Origin: Macrostomum hystrix
Lineage: Eukaryota; Animalia; Platyhelminthes
Direction: 5' to 3'
NCBI GenBank assembly: GCA_950097015.1
Contig: CATNEN010000038.1
Location: 2,170,001 to 2,234,000, forward strand
Length of the DNA stretch: 64,000 nucleotides
The notes below the pieces were generated by a model. That model did not search any database and had not been told where the DNA came from. It saw nothing but the letters and a program-made list of their open reading frames with translations. Made by a program: the position numbers and the translations under genes. Shown in pieces: positions 40,568-64,000 of the stretch (positions are counted from its first letter, which is position 1; each line of letters begins with the position of its first letter).

Positions 40568-43500
40568 TTAGATCTGATCGAAATCAAGCGGCGGCACCCG
40601 TTCAGCCGGAGCCAACATCAGCAGGTCCTTCGAGATGCTGACGCCTCTGTCGCCGCTGCCAATGTTCGGCTTGCCTAGGAGGTCCACGTAGCAGGTTTTA
40701 CTAGCTGTACAGGGCGCGCTTAGCAACTCCAGCACGGCCACTGTGTTGATGCCCTCGCGTAGTACCGACCGGGGCACGTACAGTGTCACCTGAGGCCCGG
40801 CGCAGGGCCAGTAGCGACCCAAATTGAAGCCGTTTATCCACAACTGGCCCTTGCAGAATGTGGACATGTTTGCGAAGGTGTCAGTCAGGCTGGCTGGGCT
40901 CAGGCTGAATGTGCCCATCAGTAGACTGCCCTGAGATGGCTGCCCCGCCTCGCTGGCTTGCAGAGCTTCTGCCCGCGCGAGCAAGCTGGTGGGGGTTAGT
41001 TTTCAACTGTTGTAAATAAAACTATCATCTGGGAATTAGTGGCAGTAGAGTCTCATTAGTGGCAATAGTCCTTGAGCTCGATACCGCGACGAAACCGCAT
41101 TTATTTGGGGCGCAGTCGCGGACAAGGCTTGGGGGCGGGTAAGATATCCGACCCTAAACTAATGTTTCATGTTATACGCGACTGACTACTGCTTAGTACA
41201 TTAAGGTAGTTAATCCCAAGCAATAGTTGACGATCAGACAACTCACCGCCTAGAAAATGGGGACTTGGCGGCCCATCGATCGAAGTCCAAGGAGTAGCTG
41301 AACCAGCCGTACAATGGCGACCCATTCAGCGACACATTGCCAAGGATTCCCTGGACAAACAGACAAGCAGCAAGTCCAGTTTGTTAACCGTAAAATAAAC
41401 AGAATAACTTTTGCGTATTCGCGTTAGACCGCTAGCAGATTTCAAGCCAGATAGTTTACCTTCTAAACTGCTTCAAGCCTTATCTATTTGTTTCTATAAG
41501 TTGCCTCTTTCTGGCACTTTCATGGCACTGAAAAGGCGTTTATTGGTATGCCCCTGGAATCTAACCTGACTAGTTATATCACAAACCAGCTGACCTTAAC
41601 ATTGCCCTGAAGGTCTCCGCCGTAATTGACGTGACCGCAGTTTTCCACTAGCAGCCAAAGGTTGCGCACGCTCGCCGGGTCGCTGGCTGAGAAGTTTAGA
41701 ACCGCCTCCGAGTCCGAGTAGCTGACGGAGCCGAGAAACTGGCCCAGCCACGGCTGCGAGTCGCTGGAGCCGAATGCGTAGACGTAGTCACGAAACTTAT
41801 CCAGTTTGAGCGAGTACTCACCGCTGATAGAGGCGTTTGGCAGTTCTGTGCTGTACAGGGCAAAGCCATGGTACTGCCCAAGCGTCTCCATGGCAACAGG
41901 TAGTTTTCCAGCAGTGTGGGCAACAATGAAGGAATCCAAGTTGCCGAGCAGGCTGGCCAGTCGGTACATCTGAACGCGGCCCAGCGATGAGGCCGTAGCG
42001 TTTGGCGGAATGGTCGGCGGCTGACGGCCAGTGGCGTTTGTAATCACCTGCCTGATGAGCTGGTATTTGTACCTTCAAATTCAAAAAGGGAGTGAGGGTC
42101 GAGCAGTTCATAGTTACAGCTAGATTGACGCATGTATTAATGTACGTGTATCTCCGAAATGCCAATCCCAACAATTCAACGAACCGAGTATCGCCGTTCT
42201 CAGCCATCGGAGCATCGTAATCATACGAGGTCGGCTGAGGCGCCAACGGCGGCGAATTGGCGCCATTCCAGTAGCCGAAGTTCGTGCCGCCGAAGAACAT
42301 GTAGATGTTGACATTGACGCCGTATGCCAGCATGCGAGCGAGGCCCTTGGCAACAGACTGGGCATCCACCTGGGCATGCTGACCGGACCAGTTGTCAAGC
42401 CAGCCGGCGTAGTACTCGGAGTTCACCAGCGGGCCCTTCGGCTGAATCGCTCGCAGCGGCGCGAATGTGGCGTTCAGCGAGTCAGCTAAAAGTTGGTTTT
42501 GTAGAAGCGGATTGTTCAAATCGATCCAGTGAGGTCAAAAAAATAATTTCGATTCTCGAAATCCAGCTTCACAGCTCAATGTAATTTATGGCTCATAGTG
42601 AGAGAATCAAAGTGCGCCGGCAATCAACTCACTTCCTTCCGGGCCAAAGTCGACAGTAGCGAAAAAAAGCTTCTCCTGGGCGGCGCACTTTAAAAAGTAC
42701 TCAGCCTGACCGTCTGTGCTAAATAGCACGGTTTGGTTGCCAAGGTAGCGCCTACCTAGCTGGTACAGGTGTCTAATGTAGGGAAGATCGCATTGTCCTG
42801 TACTGCCGTACTCATTCTCCAGCTGCACCATGATCACATTGCCACCATTGGAGTACAGGCGATTGGCGATTTTCGGCAGCAGAACAGCCATCCATTGGTC
42901 CACTGCAGCCAGGAATTGAGGATCGCTGCTGCGCATCACCATGGAGGCGTTGCGACGCAGCAACCATGCTGGCAGGCCGCCGAAGTCCCACTCGGCGCAG
43001 ATGTAAGGACCAGCCCGCACAATGACTAGTAGCTCGTGCTTCTGGGCCAGAGATAAGAATGTGTCCAGGTCTGCCGGACCAGAGAAGCGGTACTGACCCG
43101 GCTGAGGCTCGTGAAAGTTCCAGGGAACATAAATCTGAATGGCATTTAGGCCAGCGGCGCGCATTTTCGCCAGTCGATCGTCCCAGTCGGAGGGAAGGAG
43201 ACGAAAGTAGTGAATACTTCCGGAGATGTATTGGAATGGCTGACCATCTTTGAGGAACGTGTCGTTGTCGTAGTCAATGCTAAAGCTCTTAGCAAAACTT
43301 GGCTCACGATTCACAGCCAAGCTGGTTAACACCAAGCAAGATGAGATCAAAGAAACTGAAAAAGAAAGTTTAACACAATCAGTTTTGTCTAATAGCCTCT
43401 TGGGCTATTTGAGTATTGAGTATAATAATTAAGGAAAATTTTCACAAAAAGCTGCGAAAGAAAAATATATTCATTCATTTCTCGGCAATAGCGGAGCCAG

Positions 43501-43916: not shown

Positions 43917-45879
43917 GCTTACGAGTTTTAAGAAATTTATTCTTTAGTAGTTGTTGTAATTGCAATGTCTAGTACTCATATAATTTCAAACATAGCATAC
44001 TAAATACAGAATTCGCAATTTTATGTCTATGATTTTTTTACTATTATATGAATTTATAGCGCTTCTAGAATCATATTTTTAGAGAAGTCAATTGAAATCA
44101 AAATGGCAATATCACATTCAATGGCAAAAAATTTACTTACATTTCAACCACTGCATCAATAAAGACTTTGGTTTTATTGGCAATATCGCGTAAGTCAAAA
44201 AAAATAATTTTACCGCCTTGAAATAAAAAGTATAGTTAGTTTTTACCGATTTCTTACAAGCCGATCATTTTGAAAAATGTTGCATTTTTAAAGTATGCAA
44301 AAGTACTTGAACATAAAGTTTTCAATTACTAAAACAAAGTCATATGTTCTACTTGAAAGCTTTATTATATTTTTAGGTAAATGGCAATTATAAAAAAACT
44401 AAGTGTAAATGATTAATCGATTCTTTAAGAAATTAAAAACATTTTTAGGCGAATATCAACGAAGGAAACTGCCCGTTGTTTATTTGATTGTAGGCCCTAC
44501 CCATCATTTGGCATAACAAGTCTACTGACATTTTTTGTGCGGACAGTCGTGCCGACGGTCAAAGTTGCAAGACCAAGGGCAAGATGCTTCCATGTCTAAT
44601 AAGGGCTCAAATGTATTTTTGTTTGTTTAATTAATTATTTGACTACAAATTTGTGCCAAAAGTGTACTTTTTTGTCTTAAAGCTATCCTAATAATCTAAT
44701 AATTTGATATATGGTTTTGAAATGAATTTAGGAACCACTAAAGCCTTTATTAGAAAAGACAATGATCTAGAGAACAATTTAAACAGAGCTTAAGACTAAA
44801 CAAAGTAGGCCTATAGTTGTGGTGCAAATTTAAAATTAAATTTAAACTAAGAAAAATGCATTAGTGTCCTTATTAGGCCCTAGCTACTAAACAAATGGCC
44901 GACCTAGAAGATCTTAAACATGTAGTAGGCCAATTGCAAACAAACCTCACCTTTACAACTAGACTTACAACTAGCTAGGCCTAAATGAAAAAATCTTAAA
45001 AACAATGACATTTTGTAGGCAAATTATTTTGTATGGTGTCACTCAGCAGAGACAATTCTTTTGAATAAATAAAAATTTCAGAAAAAGTTCTAGCTCCAGC
45101 CTCCATGGGCATTTCAGAGCAATTAGTAATTTATTTATAGTATGGTAATTATAGGCACAGTCCAATCTTGTGTGGCCTTTTTGTTGCCTGGCCATTTCAC
45201 CCTGTTATTTTGCTATTTTGATTTGTAGGTCTACTAGGGTAGGACCACTATAGGCAAGCTATAACTTGCTTGCCTAGTTAGGCCTAGCTTGGACAAGTTT
45301 TAATGTATCAATGACAATCTATTGCAATGCTTTAACAATGACATATTGCTTGAATTAATAAAATGATCCTATGTATCTGCCATAATTTTCATTGCAATGC
45401 TAAAGAATAGTGCATGACTTGTAATAGGCCTACTTGATTCTAAGGTGCCTGTCCACAGGTTTTTCAACATTTACTCAATATGGAGTCTGGCTAGCTGTTT
45501 GTAGCTAAAGAAAAGTAAGCTAGGTCTAGCTTGGCTTGGGACTTAGCTTTGTTATTTAGAAATCTTAGATAAATATCAGTATGTCTACAATTGGCATAAT
45601 GTAAAAAGGATAAGGCTTTGTCTACAAAATATTCAGAGATATTGTCACTAATTTTATTTAAATGGCATATTGCTGAAAACATTCACCTATTTATATATAC
45701 ACTTATCTAGTTGTCTCATTAGGCCTATCTTAGACTTAGCTTTGGTAGTCTTAATAATGATGGCCTTTGTCCTTAACTATACTAGACTACAAGTTAAGGA
45801 ACAAACTAGAGTCTATCTATTGAAATTTATGCAAGAAGCTTTAAAGTAACTTATTTAATTAAAAAGATATATTATTTAC

Positions 45880-46411: not shown

Positions 46412-46931
46412 ATTATTTACATAATATTTTTACTTTGCTGTAGGCCCTATAATTATTAAATCAATTATATTTTTGAACATTTTTATGAATATTATAAAAT
46501 AGGCCTATGTTTAAAAATTTGAGACCTTTTTGTGTCTAAAGACATCTATTTGAGGCATCTTTTTTTATGTCCCAACTATCATTGAAATAGACTACAATTT
46601 AATGTTTGACCCTAGTTTCTTTAAGAATTTTAATGCAGTATTTGAATGTATATATTATTGTAGTAACTATATGTAATTTATTACTTTATTTACCATTATT
46701 GGTACTGGTACCTTATTGCTGATTGCAGGTCTGACTGTCATACATTGGTATATCAGAGCCCACAGAATTGTTTCTAAGTTAGTTTTTTACTATTTTAGCA
46801 TGTTTGCTTCTAAATTTCATTGAAAACTTTTCTTTCTACTAATAGCTTTATATATCTAGACTTGCTGTTTGAGTATTATTCATTACAATTGCTACAAAGA
46901 GAACTGTAAACCTTTTCATGCTGCGAAGGTA

Positions 46932-48309
46932 ATGGCGCTGCGATTGTTGCGTACCTCCTGGCTTCTGGCAAGCAGATGTGCCGCCCCTGTCACAAACTCT
47001 CAAAGCCTGCGGTCTGTGGCATCAAGCCGGCGATTGTGCACTGCAGGCCCGTCTGGCGAGAGCCAAGCGCCGCCAAATAATTATCCAGATGGTGCCGACA
47101 CTCTGCGCTGGTTGTTGGAAACTCGACAGGTGATCAATTGCCAGATTAGCTTGCATTCAATTTGTCAATTATCATTGCATTTGTGGCTATTTATCCCACC
47201 ACTGCCACCATGTGACATGTGACATGTGAAAGACTTAGAGCCAAAGGCTCCAAACTGAGCGCAATTAAGCAAAACGCACAATGCGCCTCAGCGCACAACC
47301 CATCGATTTATAAAATCGACTTAACTAAGGGTGGTACAAAGAAAAGTACACCTCATATTGTACCTGCAGGACAGCCTTCTGGATCGGTATCTATTTGAGG
47401 ACTGTCCCTATTCGTTGCGCAAGACTCGAGTGACGCCATCTGAGGGTGGCGATAGTCTCGAGCGGCCAGTTCTGGTGCCGTCTGATCAGGTGACAGAAGT
47501 TTATGTTTGATAGCCTAATAATCCTGTAGCTTCATGTAAATATCGAATGCAAGGTAACGTTTATGAGGTTTGAATAATTAGACTGTGTTTGAATGTGTTT
47601 GTGGCTAACAAGGCAGCTAATAGCCTAGCGGTTTGAATATTAGACTGTGTTTGAATGTGTTTGTGGCTAACAAGGCAGCTGATAGCCTAGCGGTTTGAAT
47701 ATTAGACTGTGTTTGAATGTGTTTGTGGCTAACAAGGCAGCTGATAGCCTAGCGGTTTAAGACTTAGGTCCTTAGGTTAGGTTATCAAGACACTTGATTC
47801 CCATTCCTATTTGGGTGGGTGTTGTGGCCCACAGTCCATGGACCGAAAGGCTGTACACAGCGCTGTAGCCTGTGCCACTCCGCAGGTAGTTGTAATTTCT
47901 CAACTATATTCCTGTTCGCCAGATTAAAGGGATAAAAAGTATGTGGATTAGGCCCTAATAAAAATATTTCACGTCTTAAATATAGTTTATAGGTTCACTT
48001 AGCTCAAAATGGGTGATATGCTCGTATTACGATAGGTCTAACAAATACATACTAACCGGTTGCAATCCGTTACTCCCCGTTGTCAAGTCCAACAAAGTAA
48101 TCGGCTGCATCTGCGAGCCCGAAGCCACAGCTATCAACTGGTTCCAGCTGAGAAAAAGCGAGGCCACCAAGTGCCACTGCGGCTACTGGTTCAAACTGGT
48201 TGATTATCCGGAATACTTCAATGTGACCGCGGAGGATCCGGTCAGGGCGCGCCTGAGGCGAGTGCTGGCCGAGGGCGAGGGCGGCCGCAGTCGTCGACGC
48301 AGGAAGTAG
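46932..48309 (+). CDS. COX5B: Cytochrome c oxidase subunit 5B-like (mitochondrial precursor)
   Basis: Exons 46932-47129 (Arg/Ser-rich transit peptide [15 protein letters not shown]...), 47370-47489 (…[10 protein letters not shown]), 48088-48309 ([11 protein letters not shown]...NWFQL...[11 protein letters not shown]: four Zn-ligand Cys pattern of COX5B); all phase 0; ~179 aa. Confidence 0.85.
47568..47758. repeat. ~62-bp tandem triplication in COX5B intron 2
   Basis: GGTTTGAATATTAGACTGTGTTTGAATGTGTTTGTGGCTAACAAGGCAGCTGATAGCCTAGC x3. Confidence 0.9.
47780..47885 (+). mobile_element. SINE family A fragment in COX5B intron 2
   Basis: CAAGACACTT...GGGTGGGTGT...CAGTCCATGGACCGAAAGGGCTGTACACAG, degenerate match to the other copies. 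Confidence 0.5.
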
Positions 48310-48460
48310 CTTTGGAATCTGTAATTGTATAGTTTTGCTGATTCAATCTTTTTTGCAATTACAGTAATCTTATGACGTATGAAGTAGTGGAATAACATTT
48401 CGCCCTACAAAGTTCTTCTGTCTACTTTTTGCCCCCACATTGCACTTTTTAAATTACGAA

Positions 48461-48606
48461 AATAAAACTGTAATCTTCAGTTTTTTATTTGAGGGATGAT
48501 TTGTGTTTTCTTTATTGTGGAACAGTTTAAACATTTAGTGACTTAGATCGAGATTTGCAGTTATTTAAGTGCTTCCTTTTATTTATAATTAATCCCCAAT
48601 TTGCAG
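48461..48606 (+). promoter_or_regulatory. COX5B poly(A) signal followed by U-rich spacer and putative trans-splice acceptor of SAS-4
   Basis: AATAAA at 48461, T-rich tract, then TTAAT...TTTGCAG ending at 48606 directly before the SAS-4 open frame. Confidence 0.6.
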
Positions 48607-51600
48607 CTGCGCAGTCAGGAGAGCAATTGCTTCGCTCCCAGCAGCCGCTCCTGGGTGCAGCGAGCTGGCGTCGTACTCAACTATCTACCAGACGAGGAGG
48701 AAGACTTTGGCGATGTTGGAGACGACGGGGACGGTATTGGCGGCAGGAGTATTAACGAAGCGAGCTTTCCATCGCAGGCGGAAGTTGCTGCCGAAGGCTC
48801 TGAACCTGTTGACGACGGCTTCGACGAAGGCTCGCGTCGCGACTCTGACAAAGAGAACCTGCAGCAGGCCGCAGGCACAGGCGCTAATACCAACGCCTCG
48901 TCGGCAACCGACCTGCGCAGTAGTCACAATGGCGTTGGCAACGATGAAATTCCACTTGGCGGTTGTCCCGACAGAGCATTCGAAGACATCTTGGAGGAGA
49001 CGCTCAGCGGACGCAGAAAAGTTTCGGGTCCGCAACGTCAAAGACTGCCAGCGGCATCGGCAGCAGCGGCTGCGCCCTCCTCGGGAAAGCCGAAGTTTCG
49101 ATTCCTGAAACGAGGCGAAGGTATAAGCCGGTTTAACCAGGGCGGATTAACGCGCAAACCTAAAAAGCCTCAGAAGCGGAAAACCCAGCAGAATGCTGCA
49201 GGTGCATCTTCCACTGCGCCAGTTATGGCTTCTAAAACACCTCCAAAGGCGGCAGCAAACAAACAGATTGTACCTGATCCAGCACCCGTGAGAGCACAGA
49301 CTTCAGCAAATTTTATTGGTAATCAACAGCAGCAACAGCAGCAGCAGATGCTGCTGACCCAGTTAATTAATAGACAGCAACAGCAGCAGAAGACAGCTTT
49401 CTTTGAAGATCGCGACAACGGCGAGCCAGCTAGGGCGCCAACAGCTTGCTCCGATACGCGAGATGAACTGGAGGAATTCGAGCTGCTCGAAGCAGCCGCT
49501 GATAATTCTGTGGTGTCGCAGTTCTCGGCTCTGGCACTGCTGGATAAGGCCACAGTGAAGCGTCATGTGACTAGCAGACTTAGAGAGTCCGAGCAGCGTC
49601 GACTGCAGCAGCAGCCGCGACAGCAGCAGTTAATGCCACAGCAGGCCATGTACTCCGCTACTTTAGACGAGGATGACATCCCCAGCGTGTCGGACGATGA
49701 CGAAGAGCGTCTGGCGGACTCAATGCGAGAATTCAGCGGTCACAATTCCTCGTCGGCCGCTTCTCAAAGCGACTCCGGGCGAGCCTCCGCGCAGCAGCTG
49801 GCAACAGCTGGGCCGCTGGGCGCGCAGCGACGGGATTTTCACGACAGCGAAGAGTGGGGCGCCGGCGGAGTCGGTCTGCCACCGGCGGCCGCATCAGCCA
49901 CGATTGACAGCGAAGCGACCCCAACTTGCAGCTTGCTAGATCCACCTGCGTCGGCGGCTGTGCAAGCTGTCTATGGTAGGTCGAGGATTTTACCTTGTAG
50001 CATAGGCTGATTTCAACGGCTAGTTACTTTAACTTGAATCCCACTTCATGCTTTATCGCACAGCTGCCACCACATTGTAGGCGGAGGTCCATTGGCTTAT
50101 CAGACTGGGGTCATTAGCTCACTCGGTGCAATAGCAAACGCTTCTGGGCCAGGTGCGACAACTGCTGCTTCTGCTGCTGCTGCCGCGGCAGCTGAAGCGG
50201 CTAGTCTAATGATTTTTCCGCACGCTAAGACTGCCAAACAGACGGCCACAACGGCTCAGGACACTATCGTGGCCACGTCTGTGCTGCGAGAGAAACTACG
50301 AGAGTTAGAAGCCGAAATTGAACGATTCCAGGTCAGCTAATGTTTATTATGTGGGCGTGAGAAACTCGTTTCGTTTTAATCCAGGACCCGAAAATCAAAA
50401 GTCAACTGCGCGCTCTACAGACCATCAATAGTATTAGCAGTTGGACTCTTAGCAATGGCGCGTCATTAGCTTACAGTCGTACCCCCAGCCAGGGGGAGGC
50501 AGTTATGCTCATCTCGCTGACTTCCTCAACTTCCTTACTCTCTTATTGTCAGGCAGTGTACAGTCTCACTGTACCTTTTGGAATAGGCCTTAACGGCTTA
50601 AGATGGGCCCCGAAAGCCCCCAAGTTAATGAGGCCTCCCCGCGGAACCTTGATGCAAGAGGCAATCGCTTTCACCGCCTCCCCGCAGACCATAAACCCTC
50701 AGCTGGCCAAGCTGAAGCGGGAACTGGAGTCGGAGCGAGCCAGCCTCGCCGCCGAACGTCGCAAACTCGACGAGGAGCGCCGCTCGGCCGCTGAGGCTGC
50801 TCAGCGCGAGCGTGAGGCGGAGCAGCGCAAGTTGCGCAAGGAGCGCCGCCTGCTGGACGACTACGCCAAGGCGTTGAAGGCCGGCGCCGGTCGCGAGGGT
50901 CGAGAAGAGGTCGACCGGCTGCGCCAGGAGCTGACGGCGCTGCGTGATGAGTGCGCCCAGAAGGAGGCCCGCTGGTCGGCAAGTTTGGCTCGGCTGCGGG
51001 ATCGCGCCGAGGGCTTGGAGGCCGAGAAAGCCGAGCTGCGTCAGCGGGTTCAGACTCTAGAGAAGGAGCGGCTTCAACTTCGCAGTCAGCTGGCTTCCGG
51101 CGCCGGCGCCGCCCCGAAGACCTCAGCGACGCAGGCGAAAACATCGACTGCTCCGCCGCCGCCTCCTCCTCCGCCTCCGCCGCCTCAACAGCCTCAGGCG
51201 CCCCCACCGCCCCCGGTGGCACAGCCGAGTCAGCAGCTCAATGACAACAACGATGACATTCCGCTGACGGAGTCTCGACATCCGGACGGTCGAGTGGAGC
51301 AGGTCTGCTATCCTATTACATCGTCCCATTTAATTTATTCATTCTGATCCCCATTTCATTCTTTCATCCTGATCCCCATTTCATTCATTCTGATCCCATT
51401 TCATTCTTTCATTCTGATCCCTTTTTTATTCATTCTGATCCCCATTTCATTCATTCTGATCCCCATTTCATTCATTCTGATCCCCATTTCATTCATTCTG
51501 ATCCCCATTTAAATCATTCATTCTGATCCCTATTTCATTCTTTCATTCTGATCCCCATTTAAATCTTTCATTCTGATCCCTATTTCATTCTTTCATTCTG

Positions 51601-52968
51601 ATCCCTATTTAAGTCATCGAGATCCTCATTTTACTCTGATTACGGCCTAAGCCAAATTTATTCAGTAATCCCGTTTTTTCAGACTTTTTTCTTGATTTAC
51701 TTATTATCTATGATCCCTATTTTATTCCATTTCCCTTTACTTAGCATTTCTCACCCTACTCCACATTTCCAGGTGTTTCCAAGCGGCCGTCGCCGAGTCG
51801 TGTTCCCCAACGGCACTGTCAAGCTGGTGTCAGCCGACGGTGCCACCATAGCAACCAACTACTTCAACGGAGACGTGAAGACGGCCTACTCCAGCGGAGG
51901 CTCGGACAGTCGGGTGGTTTATCGCTACGCGGACACTGGCACGGTGCACACCACTTTTGCCGACGGTCGCCAACTGTTGGACTTTGTCAATGGCCAGTCC
52001 GAGACCGTATTCCCTGACGGCTCGAGGGAGATTCGCTTTCCAGACGGTGTGATCAAGTCTGTTAGCGCTGACGGCACCGAGGAGGTTCGTTGCCGCGTGG
52101 GACTGCTCGGGTTTCAAACGGCTGTTACCAAGCACAATAAGAGATAGGAGGCTGAATTCAAGATTGTCAGGCAATAGATAATACGCTGTTAGAAAGTAGG
52201 TCAAGAACTGTTAGACAGTAGTTTTTAGGACTGTTAGACTGTTAGACAGCAGATCAGGGGCTGTTAGACAGCAGATCAGAGGCTGTTAGACAGCAGATCA
52301 GAGGCTGTTAGACAGCTGATCAGAGGCTGTTAGACAGCAGATCAGAGGCTGTTAGACAGCAGATCAGAGGCTGTTAGACAGCTGATCAGAGGCTGTTAGA
52401 CAGCAGATCAGAGGCTGTTAGACAGCTGATCAGAGGCTGTTAGACAGCAGATCAGAGGCTGTTAGACAGCTGATCAGAGGCTGTTAGACAGCAGATCAGA
52501 GGCTGTTAGACAGCTGATCAGAGGCTGTTAGACAGCAGATCAGAGGCTGTTAGACAGCAGATCAGAGGCTGTTAGACAGCAGATCAGAGGCTGTTAGACA
52601 GCAGATCAGAGGCTGTTAGACAGCAGATCAGAGGCTGTTTGACAGCAGATCAGAGGCTGTTAGACAGCAGATCAGAGGCTGTTAGACAGCAGATCAGAGG
52701 CTGATCAATCCTGATTTCGTTGTTCCAGGTGTCGGCTTTTCCAGACGGCACCAGGCTGAGGCTGGTGAACGGCCCGGCGCCACTAAAGGAGATTTACTTT
52801 CGCAACGGCCAAAAGGAGGTGCACACGCCGCAGTATCGTTGCCGCGAATATCCCGACGGCACCAGGAAGACCATCTATCCGGACGGTCGGCAGGAGACTC
52901 GATATGCGTCCGGTCGGGTGCGAATCAAGGATCGAGAAGGTCGAGTGCTGATGGACAGAAAGCCTTAG
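48607..52968 (+). CDS. CENPJ: Centriole protein SAS-4/CPAP (CENPJ-like) with C-terminal TCP10/G-box domain
   Basis: Exons 48607-49975 (N-terminal [10 protein letters not shown] motif, [25 protein letters not shown]), 50081-50331 ([16 protein letters not shown]), 50688-51302 (coiled coil, Pro tract, HPDGRVEQ), 51773-52084 and 52729-52968 (repeated FPNG/YPDG beta-hairpins, [10 protein letters not shown]). No in-frame ATG at the 5' end. Confidence 0.9.
51335..51612. repeat. Degenerate TTCATTCTGATCCCCAT repeat in SAS-4 intron
   Basis: Direct inspection. Confidence 0.88.
52207..52703. repeat. 22-bp minisatellite (CTGTTAGACAGCAGATCAGAGG) in SAS-4 last intron
   Basis: Direct inspection; ends ~25 bp before the 52729 acceptor. 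Confidence 0.95.
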
Positions 52969-53547
52969 AGCTCCATTTAAATTCCCCCGTGGTTTTTCTA
53001 CTGTTCACTTGATCATTACAAAATATTAAGCAAAGCTACATTCTGTGACCAAGGTGATGATAGAATTAAGATTTTTGCACTCTGTCGAACAAAAGAATCG
53101 CTTCAATTAACTTCCCCCCCGTTGGCTATTATTGGCAGGATCCATTGTATTGATACAGACACAACTTACCTGTGCTCAACTACCTTTTTTGCTCTCCGTA
53201 TCTGGCTACTACTAGTAGTTTGTTGCATTGCCTTTGTCCCTCTTTTTTGAAATAGTTTGAAAACCGTCCTAAATTAATTTCTATTTTTATATTAATGATC
53301 TTTTTGGTGGAAACAGAAATCTTTTTTCTGTTTTCCAGTGAATTTCGAATTAGCTATCTAAAAAACATTTTGCTGTGTTTTCATTTTCTTGACTTTGTTG
53401 ATTTGGTTTCAAGGTGTATTATGTTTTTTATTATAAACAAATGGATTGGAAATTGATAAAATTGCTACTTTGTTGTTTTTTAGTTGAAGCAACTTGATTA
53501 CTAGGGCACGGGTAAGGGGCCGTTTAGATTTTAACGCAGTAGTTTTG

Positions 53548-54150
53548 TTTCTAAGAAGTACTTTATGTTTCTAAGAAGACCTAAATGTTTCTAAAAAGCA
53601 GCTTAGGTTTCTAAGAAGTTTTAAATGTTTCTAAGAAGTAGCTTAGGTCTCTAAGAAGTCCTAAATGTTTCTAAAAAGCAGCTTAGGTCTCTAAGAAGAC
53701 CTAAATGTTTCTAAGAAGTAGCTTAGGTTTCTAAGAAGTCCTAAATGTTTCTAAGAAGTAGCTTAGGTTTCTAAGAAGTAGCTTAGGTTTCTAAGAAGTA
53801 GCTTAGGTTTCTAAGAAGTCCTAATGTTTCTAAGAAGTAGCTTAGGTCTCTAAGAAGACCTAAATGTTTCTAAGAAGTAGCTTAGGTTTCTAAGAAGTAG
53901 CTTAGGTTTCTAAGAAGTCCTAAAGGTTTCTAAGAAGTCCTAAATGTTTCTAAAAAGCAGCTTAGGTTTCTAAGAAGACCTAAATGTTTCTCAGAAGCAG
54001 CTTAGGTTTCTAAGAAGTCCTAAATGTTTCTAGGAAGTACTTTCTGTTTCTTAGAAGTACTTTATGTTTATAAAAAAAATTTTTGGTTTCTAAAATGTAT
54101 TTTATGTTTCTAAGAATTCCTAAATGTTTCTAAGAATTAGTTTATGTTGT
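53548..54150. repeat. 20-bp AT-rich minisatellite (TTTCTAAGAAGTAGCTTAGG variants)
   Basis: Direct inspection. Confidence 0.92.
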
Positions 54151-59727: not shown

Positions 59728-62700
59728 AAGGGGAGTGGTCGGTAGTCAGAGGGAGTGAGAGGGAGTGAGAGGGAGTGAGAGGGAGTCCGAGGGAGTGAAA
59801 GGGAGTAAGAGGGAGTGAGAGGGAGTGAGAGGGAGTGAGAGAGTGGGAGGGAGTGGTAGGTAGTCAGAGGGAGTGAGAGGGAGTGAGAGGGAGTGAGAGG
59901 GAGTCAGAGGGAGTGAGAAGGAGTGAGAGGGAGTGAGAGGGAGTGAGAAGGAGTGAAAGGGAGTAAGAGGGAGTGAGAGGGAGTGAGAGGGAGTGAGAGA
60001 GTGGGAGGGAGTGAGAGGGAGTGAGAGGGAGTGAGAGGGAGTGAGAAGGAGTGAGAGGGAGTGAGAGGGAGTGAGAAGGAGTGAGAGGGAGTGAGAGGGA
60101 GTGAGAGGGAGTGAGAAGGAGTGAAAGGGAGTAAGAGGGAGTGAGAGGAAGTGAAAGGGAGTAAGAGGGAGTGAGAGGGAGTGAGAGGGAGTGAGAGGGA
60201 GTGAGAGGGAGTGAGAGGGAGTGATAGGGAGTGAGAGGGAGTCAGAGGGAGTAAGAGGGAGTGAGAGGGAGTGAGAAGGAGTGAAAGGGAGTAAGAGGGA
60301 GTGAGAGGGAGTGAGAGGGAGTGAGAGAGTGGGAGGGAGTGAGAGGGAGTGAGAGGGAGTGAGAGGGAGTGAGAAGGAGTGAGAGGGAGTGAGAGGGAGT
60401 GAGAGGGAGTGAGAGGGAGTGAGAAGGAGTGAGAGGGAGTGAGAGGGAGTGAGAGGGAGTGAGAGGGAGTGAGAGGGAGTGAGAGGGAGTGAGAGAGTGG
60501 GAGGGAGTGAGAGGGAGTGAGAGGGAGTGAGAGGGAGTGAATGGGGATGAGAGGGAGTGAGAGGGAATGAGAGGGAGTGAGAGGGAGTGAGAGGGAGTGA
60601 GAGGGAGTGAGAGGGAGTCAGAGGGAGTGAGAGGGAGTGAGAAGGAGTGAAAGGGAGTGAGAAGGAGTGAAAGGGAGTAAGAGGGAGTGAGAGGGAGTAA
60701 GAGGGAGTGAAAGGGAGTGAGAAGGAGTGAAAGGGAGTAAGAGGGAGTGAGAGGGAGTGAGAAGGAGTGAAAGGGAGTAAGAGGGAGTGAGAGGGAGTGA
60801 GAGGGAGTGAGAGGGAGTGAGAGGGAGTCAGAGGGAGTGAGAGGGAGTGAGAAGGAGTGAAAGGGAGTGAGAAGGAGTGAAAGGGAGTAAGAGGGAGTGA
60901 GAGGGAGTAAGAGGGAGTGAGAGGGAGTAAGAGGGAGTGAGAGGGAGTGAGAAGGAGTGAAAGGGAGTAAGAGGGAGTGAGAGGGAGTGAGAGGGAGTGA
61001 GAGAGTGGGAGGGAGTGAGAGGGAGTGAGAGGGAGTGAGAGGGAGTAAGAGGGAGTGAGAGGGAGTGAGAGGGAGTGAGAGAGTGGGAGGGAGTGAGAGG
61101 GAGTGAGAGGGAGTGAGAGGGAGTGAGAAGGAGTGAGAGGGAGTGAGAGGGAGTGAGAGGGAGTGAGAGGGAGTGAGAGGGAGTGAGAGGGAGTGAGAGG
61201 GAGTGAGAGGGAGTGAGAGGGAGTGAGAGGGAGTGAGAGGGAGTGAGAGGAAGTGAAAGGGAGTAAGAGGGAGTGAGAGGGAGTGAGAGGGAGTGAGAGG
61301 GAGTGAGAGGGAGTGAGAGGAAGTGAGAGGGAGTGAGAGGGAGTCAGAGTGAGTGAGAGGGAGTGAGAAGGAGTGAAAGGGAGTAAGAGGGGGTGAGAAG
61401 GAGTGAGAGGGAGTGAGAGAGAGAGTGGGAGGGAGTGAGAAGTAGTGAGAGGGAGTGAGGGGGAGTGAGAGGGAGTGGGAGGGAGTGAGAGGGAGTGAGA
61501 GGGAGTGAGAGAGTGGGAGGGAGTGAGAGGGAGTGAGAGGGAGTGAATGGGGATGAGAGGGAGTGAAAGGGGATGAGAGGGAGTGAGAGGGAGTGAGAGA
61601 GAGTGGGAGGGAGTGAGAAGTAGTGAGAGGGAGTGAGGGGGAGTGAGAGGGAGTGGGAGGGAGTGAGAGGGAGTGAGAGGGAGTGAGAGGGAGTGAGAGG
61701 GAGTGAGAGGGAGTGAGAGGGAGTGAGAGGGAGTGAGAGGGAGTGAGAGGGATGAGAGGGAGTGAGAGGGAGTGAGAGGGAGTGAGAGGGAGTGAGAGGG
61801 AGTGAGAGGGAGTCAGAGTGAGTGAGAGGGAGTGAGAAGGAGTGAAAGGGAGTAAGAGGGAGTGAGAGGGAGTGAGAAAGAGTGAAAGGGAGTAAGAGGG
61901 GGTGAGAAGGAGTGAGAGGGAGTGAGAGAGAGTGTGGGAGGGAGGGAGAAGGAGTGAGAGGGAGTGAGAGGGAGTGAGAGGGAGTGAGAGAGTGGGAGGG
62001 AGTGAGAGAAAGTGAGAGGGAGTGAGAGGGAGTGAATGGGGATGAGAGGGAGTGAGAGGGACTGAGAGGGAGTGAGAGGGAGTGAGAGGGAGTGAGAGGG
62101 AGTGAGAGGGAGTGAGAGGGAGTGAGAGGGAGTGAGAGGGAGTGAGAGGGAGTGAGAGGGAGTGAGAGGGAGTCAGAGTGAGTGAGAGGGAGTGAGAAGG
62201 AGTGAAAGGGAGTAAGAGGGAGTGAGAGGGAGTGAGAAAGAGTGAAAGGGAGTAAGAGGGGGTGAGAAGGAGTGAGAGGGAGTGAGAGAGAGTGTGGGAG
62301 GGAGGGAGAAGGAGTGAGAGGGAGTGAGAGGGAGTGAGAGGGAGTGAGAGAGTGGGAGGGAGTGAGAGGGAGTGAGAGGGAGTGAATGGGGATGAGAGGG
62401 AGTGAGAGGGAATGAGAGGGAGTGAGAGGGAGTGAGAGGGAGTGAGAGGGAGTGAGAGGGAGTCAGAGGGAGTGAGAGGGAGTGAGAGAGTGGGAGGGAG
62501 TGAGAGGGGGTGAGAGGGAGTGAATGGGGATGAGAGGGAGTGAGAGGGAATGAGAGGGAGTGAGAGGGAGTGAGAGGGAGTGAGAGGGAGTGAGAGGGAG
62601 TGAGAGGGAGTAAGAGGAGGTGAGAAGGAGTGAGAGGGAGTGAGAGAGAGTGTGGGAGGGAGGGAGAAGGAGTGAGAGGGAGTGAGAGGGAGTGAGAGGG

Positions 62701-64000
62701 AGTGAGAGAGTGGGAGGGAGTGAGAGGGAGTGAATGGGGATGAGAGGGAGTGAGAGGGAATGAGAGGGAGTGAGAGGGAGTGAGAGGGAGTGAGAGGGAG
62801 TGAGAGGGAGTGAAAGGGAGTCAGAGGGAGTGAGAGGGAGTAAGAGGGAGTGAGAGGGAGTGAGAAGGAGTGAAAGGGAGTAAGAGGGAGTGAGAGGGAG
62901 TGAGAGGGAGTGAGAGGGAGTGAGAGGGAGTGAGAGGGAGTGAGAGGGAGTAAGAGGGAGTGAGAGGGAGTGAGAGGGAGTCAGAGTGAGTGAGAGGGAG
63001 TGAGAGGGAATGAGAGGGAGTGAGAGGGAGTGAGAGGGAGTGAGAAGGAGTGAAAGGGAGTAAGAGGGAGTGAGAGGGAGTGAGAGGGAGTGAGAGGGAG
63101 TGAGAGGAAGTGAAAGGGAGTGAGAGGGAGTGAGAGGGAGTGAGAGGGAGTGAGAGGGAGTGAGAGGGAGTGAGAGGGAGTCAGAGTGAGTGAGAGGGAG
63201 TAAGAGGGAGTAAGAGGGAGTGAGAGGGAGTGAGAGGGAGTGAGAGGGAGTGAGAGGGAGTGAGAGGGAGTGAGAGGGAGTGAGAGGGAGTCAGAGTGAG
63301 TGAGAGGGAGTGAGAAGGAGTGAAAGGGAGTAAGAGGGGGTGAGAAGGAGTGAGAGGGAGTGAGAGAGAGAGTGGGAGGGAGTGAGAAGTAGTGAGAGGG
63401 AGTGAGGGGGAGTGAGAGGGAGTGGGAGGGAGTGAGAGGGAGTGAGAGGGAGTGAGAGGGAGTGAGAGGGAGTGAGAGGGAGTGAGAGAGTGGGAGGGAG
63501 TGAGAGGGAGTGAGAGGGAGTGAATGGGGATGAGAGGGAGTGAAAGGGGATGAGAGGGAGTGAGAGGGAGTGAGAGGGAGTGAGAGGGAGTGAGAGGGAG
63601 TGAGAGGGAGTGAGAGGGAGTCAGAGGGAGTGAGAGGGAGTAAGATTGAGTGAGAGGGAGTGAGAAGGAGTGAAAGGGAGTAAGAGGGAGTAATAGGGAG
63701 TGAGAGGGAGTGAGAGGGAGTGAGAGGGAGTGAGAGGGAGTGAGAGGGAGTGAGAGGGAGTGAGAGGGAGTGAGAGGGAGTGAGAGGGAGTGAGAGGGAG
63801 TGAGAGGGAGTCAGAGTGAGTGAGAGGGAGTGAGAGGGAATGAGAGGGAGTGAGAGGGAGTGAGAGGGAGTGAGAAGGAGTGAAAGGGAGTAAGAGGGGA
63901 ATGGGGATGAGAGGGAGTGAGAGGGAATGAGAGGGAGTGAGAGGGAGTGAGAGGGAGTGAGAGGGAGTGAGAGGGAGTGAGAGGGAGTGAGAGGGAGTGA
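59728..64000. repeat. 10-bp purine-rich satellite (GAGAGGGAGT)n, >4.2 kb, runs off window end
   Basis: Direct inspection; recurring variant blocks (GAGAAGGAGTGAAAGGGAGTAA, GAATGGGGAT). Confidence 0.98.

Follow-up and report, generated by a model that had tools for sequence, protein, structure and literature searches.

The locus lies within a window of 64,000 nucleotides from the flatworm Macrostomum hystrix (GenBank assembly GCA_950097015.1, contig CATNEN010000038.1, positions 2,170,001 to 2,234,000 of the forward strand), and all coordinates given here are those of the window. The upstream gene is a three-exon COX5B gene on the plus strand that begins with an ATG at 46932 and ends with a TAG stop codon at 48307-48309. 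Its exons are as follows.

46932-47129, plus strand: COX5B exon 1, 66 codons, with a phase 0 donor (CAG/GTGATC) and a frame that runs into exons 2 and 3
47370-47489, plus strand: COX5B exon 2, 40 codons, phase 0, with acceptor cctgcag/ and donor CAG/GTGACA
48088-48309, plus strand: COX5B exon 3, zinc-binding C-terminal domain and the TAG stop codon

A PDB search with exon 3 matched the human and bovine COX5B chains 5z62_F and 1occ_F (E 1.8e-7), and the GCICE-type cysteine stretch aligns with both. The second cysteine pair has the form CxC in M. hystrix instead of CxxC. Exon 2 queried alone against the PDB gave no match, and exon 1 is likely to encode the mitochondrial presequence. The identity of COX5B proposed in the original prediction is upheld by the matched PDB chains, and its stop at 48309 was found again on re-reading the sequence.

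Downstream of COX5B, the gene modelled at 48607-52968 is the single-copy orthologue of CENPJ/CPAP/SAS-4 in this Macrostomum flatworm, and is referred to below as SAS-4. The gene model and the conserved segments of its first exon are as follows.

48607-49975, plus strand: SAS-4 exon 1, 456 codons and 1 nt, with donor ATG/GTAGGT at 49975/49976
48655-48684, plus strand: motif of the W..RAGV(I/V)LN type, codons 17-26 of the SAS-4 frame
48967-49143, plus strand: CPAP tubulin-binding (PN2-3) region, residues 121-179
50081-50331, plus strand: SAS-4 exon 2; the 49975 donor pairs with a start at 50081 and the 49979 donor with one at 50064, and both pairings are in frame
50688-51302, plus strand: SAS-4 exon 3, with a coiled-coil-like region and a stretch rich in proline
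51773-52084, plus strand: SAS-4 exon 4, G-box/TCP repeats
52729-52968, plus strand: SAS-4 exon 5, the final G-box repeats with the TAG stop codon at 52966-52968

An alternative donor of exon 1 lies at 49979/49980, and the frame from 48607 is open for 467 codons. In Pfam, the PN2-3 region matched PF25779 (E 4e-5, 24.3 bits, cutoff 22), and Tcp10_C was matched above the gathering score both by the open reading frame 51692-52147, which contains exon 4 (E 4.5e-23), and by exon 5 (E 2.7e-16). Exon 3 gave weak matches of the coiled-coil type only. In the PDB, residues 121-196 matched 5itz_D, Centromere protein J (E 5e-4), with the alignment passing through FLKRGEG. Together, PF25779, Tcp10_C and 5itz sustain the SAS-4 identity that had been assigned from the letters of the DNA. 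Like CENPJ/CPAP/SAS-4 proteins, the gene product thus combines a PN2-3 region that has FLKRGEG at its core with a coiled-coil-like region in the centre and G-box (Tcp10_C) repeats at the C-terminus; glutamine-rich and proline-rich inserts of low complexity set it apart from the known members. In human CENPJ, PN2-3 begins at about residue 311, whereas it starts at about residue 121 in the Macrostomum protein, which hence has a much shorter N-terminal part. Vertebrate CENPJ carries a motif of the W..SRAGVILN type at its N-terminus, which codons 17-26 of SAS-4 may resemble, as proposed in the original prediction.

The protein-representative search with exon 1 returned a haptophyte CPAP fragment as the sole match (E 7.9e-5), and hence no flatworm or other animal orthologue by which the N-terminus could be anchored. 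Searches for homologous proteins with residues 1-60, the whole of exon 1 and residues 112-190 gave no match, and a protein-atlas search with residues 1-60 gave no usable one. Entries for CENPJ and COX5B were absent from the supplementary tables of the M. lignano transcriptome papers checked. A second genomic copy of SAS-4 or a retrocopy bearing the spliced leader (SL) was sought and none was found, which indicates that the locus is single-copy.

The two genes are separated by a gap with the following features.

48310-48606, plus strand: gap between COX5B and SAS-4, 297 bp, 42% T and 31% GC
48461-48466, plus strand: AATAAA, the sole AATAAA/ATTAAA between the COX5B stop codon and the acceptor, followed by a GU/U-rich stretch
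48555-48560, plus strand: alternative upstream TTGCAG acceptor, ending 46 nt before 48606
48600-48606, plus strand: TTTGCAG acceptor

Every frame of the gap contains 6-8 stop codons. The AATAAA reported earlier at 48461 was confirmed, and is the only poly(A) signal present. The gap consists of the COX5B 3' UTR followed by a spacer of ~125-140 nt, representing either intercistronic sequence or an outron. The acceptor TTTGCAG fits [T/C]TNCAG, the top trans-splice acceptor motif in M. lignano (PMC8629364). The upstream TTGCAG, which the original prediction does not mention, is a site at which the leader would be joined out of frame to an open reading frame of only 65 codons, i.e. a non-productive junction. 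An Rfam search of the 44-54 kb interval found nothing.

SAS-4 exon 1 has no evident start codon. Its frame is closed by a TAA at 48586-48588 (plus strand), seven codons 5' of the acceptor; the interval contains no ATG, and the first in-frame ATG is at 49225-49227 (plus strand). This is codon 207, preceded by 206 codons free of ATG, and re-reading bore out both the acceptor at 48606 and the 456-codon frame described earlier, with its first ATG ~200 codons in. Met207 falls 3' of the tubulin-binding region. Thus, the conservation of that region at residues 121-179 means that translation must begin upstream of any genomic ATG. Four ATGs precede codon 207, all in frame +1, the first of them at 48713; hence scanning that lacked a leader AUG would begin an out-of-frame open reading frame of 131 codons.

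The published Macrostomum leader of 35 nt has 23 exact copies in the genome, many of them in tandem arrays of ~11.6 kb, and the 109-nt SL RNA folds into three hairpins (z = -3.6 against shuffles). The SL RNA genes have ...TTGCATG/GTAAG at the end of the leader, with an ATG directly before the donor, and this terminal ATG is the only one in the leader. Read directly, the leader ATG joined at 48607 is in frame (ATG/CTG CGC AGT CAG), an outcome expected by chance in 1 of 3 cases. Both expectations of the original prediction on this point, a leader ending in AUG and its agreement with the SAS-4 frame, were borne out. Initiation from the AUG of the SL is an established mechanism in flatworms (Cheng et al. 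2006, cited in both PMC9851317 and PMC12582326), and is required by more than 40 cDNAs of S. mansoni according to the summary of Cheng et al. 2006 in PMC9851317. In the paper on the M. hystrix genome, the final ATG of the SL is regarded as a likely start codon (PMC10468722).

These features, all read from genomic sequence, make it probable that SAS-4 takes its start AUG from the trans-spliced leader, with both the use of the acceptor at 48606 and initiation at the leader AUG predicted. Cleavage and polyadenylation of the pre-mRNA would follow the AATAAA of COX5B (48461), and the 35-nt leader (...UUGCAUG) would be trans-spliced onto 48607, giving the junction ...TTGCATG/CTGCGCAGTCAG. The terminal AUG of the leader would then initiate a protein of ~929-936 residues beginning M-LRSQESN... 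The putative SAS-4 mRNA resembles the known SL-AUG mRNAs of flatworms in that the leader ends in AUG, the first exon of the recipient has no AUG of its own, and the conserved open reading frame is in frame with the leader AUG at the junction; it differs in species and gene, and in that its junction and translation are deduced here from sequence.

About 15% of M. lignano genes are in operons. COX5B and SAS-4 are on the same strand, and the acceptor lies 297 bp beyond the COX5B stop codon and ~125-140 nt beyond the poly(A) signal. The operon criterion used for M. lignano is a spacer of <1 kb, with a mode of ~100 bp (PMC8629364); the spacing at this locus falls below 1 kb, and the interval between poly(A) signal and acceptor is near the mode. 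The spacing part of the proposed operon hence fits the published criteria (297 bp vs <1 kb). The SL-resolved operons of M. lignano (Wudarski et al. 2017, PMC5730564; PMC8629364) are likewise formed by same-strand neighbours <1 kb apart, and their downstream genes, like SAS-4, open at a [T/C]TNCAG acceptor (Ustyantsev and Berezikov 2021, PMC8629364). COX5B, the upstream gene, may itself lack trans-splicing, which is the case for the upstream gene in 18% of M. lignano operons. Unlike the M. lignano operons, the COX5B-SAS-4 pair is a putative operon, proposed from the distance between the genes, and spacing of this kind makes co-transcription of the two genes plausible, with about an even chance of being correct.

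Somewhat less probable, though a serious contender, is that the leader AUG is used without an operon. SAS-4 would then be transcribed from a separate promoter, located within a COX5B intron or in or close to the 297-bp gap, and the sequence 5' of 48607 would be the short outron of a monocistronic transcript. About 40% of trans-spliced Macrostomum genes are in operons, so most are not (PMC8629364); a short outron is normal, and there is no obvious need for shared regulation of COX5B and SAS-4. On the other hand, the gap is short and about half of it is taken by the COX5B 3' UTR and poly(A) signal, and the distance from this signal to the acceptor is close to the ~100-bp mode of operon spacers (PMC8629364). 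This explanation disputes only the operon and is compatible with initiation at the leader AUG.

The leader AUG itself would be dispensable if the real ATG were on a cis-spliced upstream exon, with the 48606 acceptor an ordinary intron end. Such an exon would lie inside a COX5B intron, or 5' of COX5B with the whole of COX5B nested in intron 1 of SAS-4. No ATG-initiated phase 0 exon with a GT[AG]AG donor was found anywhere in 44.0-48.6 kb. However, this filter is strict, because the actual donors at the locus (GTGAT, GTGAC, GTAGG and GTCAG) do not fit GT[AG]AG either. With a looser donor score over nine positions, phase 0 ATG exons are still possible at 47838-47885 and in COX5B exons 1 and 2. 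The 47838-47885 candidate has the donor CAG/GTAGTT (7 of 9), but would have to be transcribed from a promoter within COX5B, and its ATG at 47838 falls within a short dispersed repeat present at at least six other loci. A minimal ...ATG/GTAATT at 45142-45144 could also serve, but requires that COX5B be nested in SAS-4 intron 1. None of the candidates has the common GT[AG]AG donor, their peptides resemble nothing, and the SAS-4 open frame ends exactly at an acceptor that fits the trans-splice motif. A cis-spliced upstream exon is therefore improbable.

It is very unlikely that SAS-4 uses no AUG from outside the exon. Translation would then begin at Met207 and yield a truncated protein, or use a near-cognate codon, for example CUG at 48607. 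Codons of the near-cognate type do occur (CTG at 48607, TTG at 48601), but TTG at 48601 sits 5' of the acceptor. A start at Met207 deletes the conserved tubulin-binding region, leaves the 206 open, ATG-free codons unexplained and comes after four out-of-frame AUGs; on these grounds the Met207 start and non-AUG initiation were rejected.

Least likely of all is that read-through allows a COX5B donor to be cis-spliced to the SAS-4 acceptor, giving a chimera of the COX5B presequence and SAS-4. The two COX5B introns and the start of SAS-4 exon 1 are all in phase 0, so that COX5B exon 1 or 2 joined to 48607 would be in frame. As the main product this fusion was rejected, since a centriole protein headed by a mitochondrial presequence would be biologically senseless, each COX5B donor has an acceptor of its own close by and a poly(A) signal intervenes. 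The equally improbable variant in which the in-frame chimera is made beside the SL-initiated form would mean that the use of trans- or cis-splicing is regulated within an operon.

If SAS-4 does start at the leader AUG, its translation would depend wholly on trans-splicing and, if the operon is also real, its transcription would depend on the COX5B promoter. Neither dependence is new in principle, and the reliance of SAS-4 on the SL AUG is most likely sound but ordinary, the flatworm mechanism having been documented since 2006. For annotation, gene finders that require a genomic ATG would cut SAS-4 to Met207, with loss of the tubulin-binding region; therefore, flatworm gene models need SL-aware start calling. 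Open reading frames that are created by addition of the SL (slORFs; slORFfinder, PMC9851317) have likewise been described as present only in the trans-spliced mRNA. They are additional or alternative open reading frames (PMC9851317), whereas the putative slORF of SAS-4 is the main conserved open reading frame of its gene.

The gene on the forward strand downstream of COX5B encodes a SAS-4 (CENPJ/CPAP) protein. The translation of its first exon includes the CPAP tubulin-binding region (Pfam PF25779) at residues 121–179 (E = 4e-5, above the gathering score), and residues 121–196 align to human Centromere protein J in PDB (chain 5itz_D among others) via KPK..FLKRGEG..RF. Tcp10_C G-box repeats (Pfam) were identified in the ORFs at 51692–52147 (E = 4.5e-23) and 52720–52968 (E = 2.7e-16). 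The five-exon model consists of 928 codons with zero internal stops, and an alternative pairing of exons 1 and 2 (donor 49979, acceptor 50064) gives 935 codons; exons were joined solely to count codons and stops, and the homology matches come from unjoined exons and ORFs. The locus is present in one copy in the genome, as judged by DNA and protein searches. A HMMER scan of 1.8 billion protein representatives with exon 1 returned a haptophyte CPAP fragment alone and no animal orthologue, and none was found in word-indexed protein searches (residues 1–60, the whole exon and residues 112–190) or in the ESM Atlas (residues 1–60).

The COX5B gene, delineated by reading the region 46700–53400 with scripted frames, extends from an ATG at 46932 to a TAG stop at 48307–48309 and encodes 179 codons, with both introns in phase 0. 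Human and bovine COX5B chains (PDB) match exon 3 (E = 1.8e-7; alignment via GCICE...).

Features of the COX5B–SAS-4 region
46932–47129, 47370–47489 and 48088–48309, +, COX5B exons 1 to 3
47567–47758, tandem repeat of 62 bp x 3.1 in COX5B intron 2
47809–47861, dispersed repeat of ~50 bp in COX5B intron 2 (82–87% identity, at least 6 other loci)
48555–48560, +, second TTGCAG, 46 nt 5' of the productive SAS-4 acceptor
48600–48606, +, TTTGCAG acceptor, with the SAS-4 frame opening at 48607
48607–49975, +, SAS-4 exon 1
50081–50331, +, SAS-4 exon 2
50688–51302, +, SAS-4 exon 3
51325–51617, tandem repeat of 25/50 bp x 6–12 in SAS-4 intron 3
51773–52084, +, SAS-4 exon 4
52239–52703, tandem repeat of 22 bp x 21 (97% identity) in SAS-4 intron 4
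52729–52968, +, SAS-4 exon 5
53546–53997, tandem repeat of 40 bp x 11, 3' of SAS-4

The earliest in-frame ATG of SAS-4 exon 1 is at 49225 (codon 207). Four other ATGs precede it, all in frame +1, and the first of these, at 48713, opens an ORF of 131 codons. As 206 open codons and the tubulin-binding region lie before the first in-frame ATG, translation must start 5' of any ATG in the exon. The position of the tubulin-binding region by itself forces the start 5' of Met207; hence, the case does not need the putative likeness to a vertebrate W..SRAGVILN motif that had been invoked for the N-terminus.

The gap between the two genes (T 42%, GC 31%) includes 6–8 stops in every frame and a sole poly(A) signal, AATAAA at 48461. 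The SAS-4 frame is shut by a TAA at 48586, just seven codons 5' of the acceptor, and a scripted frame check revealed no ATG between them. The COX5B stop, AATAAA, acceptor and ATG-less frame on which the original prediction was built were thus all in place.

A strict filter for a phase-0 ATG exon with a GT[AG]AG donor found none in 44.0–48.6 kb, leaving room for weaker donors, and the actual donors of COX5B and SAS-4 depart from GT[AG]AG. When 40.0–48.6 kb was scored with a 9-position donor score, the best candidates were 47838–47885 (CAG|GTAGTT) and the COX5B exons. The former is disfavoured as an exon, since its ATG at 47838 sits in the short dispersed repeat.

The 35-nt Macrostomum leader (PMC8629364) has 23 exact copies in the genome (220,453,370 bases, 42 contigs), many of them in tandem arrays of ~11.6 kb. 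Its sole ATG is formed by its three final bases, and in the array SL RNA genes a GTAAG donor follows directly, in agreement with the prediction of a leader ending in AUG. The 109-nt SL RNA is predicted to form three hairpins (−32.6 kcal/mol, z = −3.6), with none of 200 shuffles folding as well. Joining the leader at 48607 would give ...UUGCAUG|CUG CGC AGU CAG; by direct reading, the SL AUG would be in frame as predicted, for which the chance by position alone is one in three. The acceptor TTGCAG agrees with [T/C]TNCAG, the top motif across 21,754 trans-splice sites of M. lignano (PMC8629364).

Three exact leader copies (L002, L003 and L004 at G000:C3:9792961, C7:8561392 and C7:9274918) share a ~11-nt 5' flank with the array genes of contig C15 (L005 and L006), whereas the flank of another copy, L001, differs. 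L002–L004, which run into unrelated sequence after the ATG and not into a GTAAG intron, are copies of the leader that lie apart from the normal SL RNA genes. In M. lignano, one protein-coding gene has a similar copy at its 5' end (PMC8629364).

It is probable, from the sequence, that the SAS-4 AUG is donated by the spliced leader. The COX5B pre-mRNA would be cut and polyadenylated soon after 48461, and the orphan acceptor at 48606 would take the leader, as there is no cis donor upstream after COX5B exon 3. The AUG of the leader, which lies 32 nt from the cap and has G at −3, would then initiate M-LRSQ.... The original interpretation stands in regard to the gene identities, the SL RNA genes with a leader ending in ATG, the frame and the acceptor motif; that the leader is spliced to the 48607 acceptor and that its AUG initiates translation are what we infer from these. 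Cheng et al. 2006 showed initiation from an SL AUG in Schistosoma mansoni (as cited in PMC9851317), and PMC12582326 again describes it as general among flatworms; in the M. hystrix genome paper (PMC10468722), the leader's terminal ATG is likewise regarded as a likely start codon. The SAS-4 locus is like the S. mansoni genes in every DNA-level criterion, the level at which the likeness is drawn. The case would be a further instance of SL-AUG initiation already known in flatworms, and its chief value is as a warning for gene annotation.

Should the leader be joined after 48560, at the second TTGCAG, an out-of-frame ORF of only 65 codons would result; this site could serve as a decoy or for regulatory, alternative trans-splicing.

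In M. lignano, genes on the same strand, <1 kb apart and with the downstream gene trans-spliced are assigned to operons. The modal spacer length is ~100 bp, and in 18% of operons the first gene is not trans-spliced (PMC8629364). The COX5B stop is 297 bp and the AATAAA ~140 nt from the SAS-4 acceptor, and the pair would be called an operon by this definition, the likeness to Macrostomum operons consisting in same-strand spacing in the DNA. SAS-4 with its own promoter and a short outron would look the same in DNA, and just ~40% of trans-spliced genes in M. lignano are within operons (PMC8629364). The chances that COX5B and SAS-4 share a precursor, as the spacing suggests, appear to be about even.

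In COX5B (48088–48306), the second cysteine pair is CxC rather than CxxC, and a basic C-terminal tail of ~35 residues (...GGRSRRRRK) extends past the end of the mammalian proteins. Another TTGCAG is located at 46723–46728, 204 nt 5' of the COX5B ATG; the leader, if joined there, would give AUG followed by GTC TGA, a two-codon uORF. Divergent from COX5B is a multi-exon gene on the minus strand (40568–43350), whose ORFs, judged by eye, look like GH35 beta-galactosidase (GLB1-like). A purine-only satellite of ~10-bp units (GAGTGAGAGG-like; GC skew ~0.99) occupies 60000–64000 and reaches the window end.
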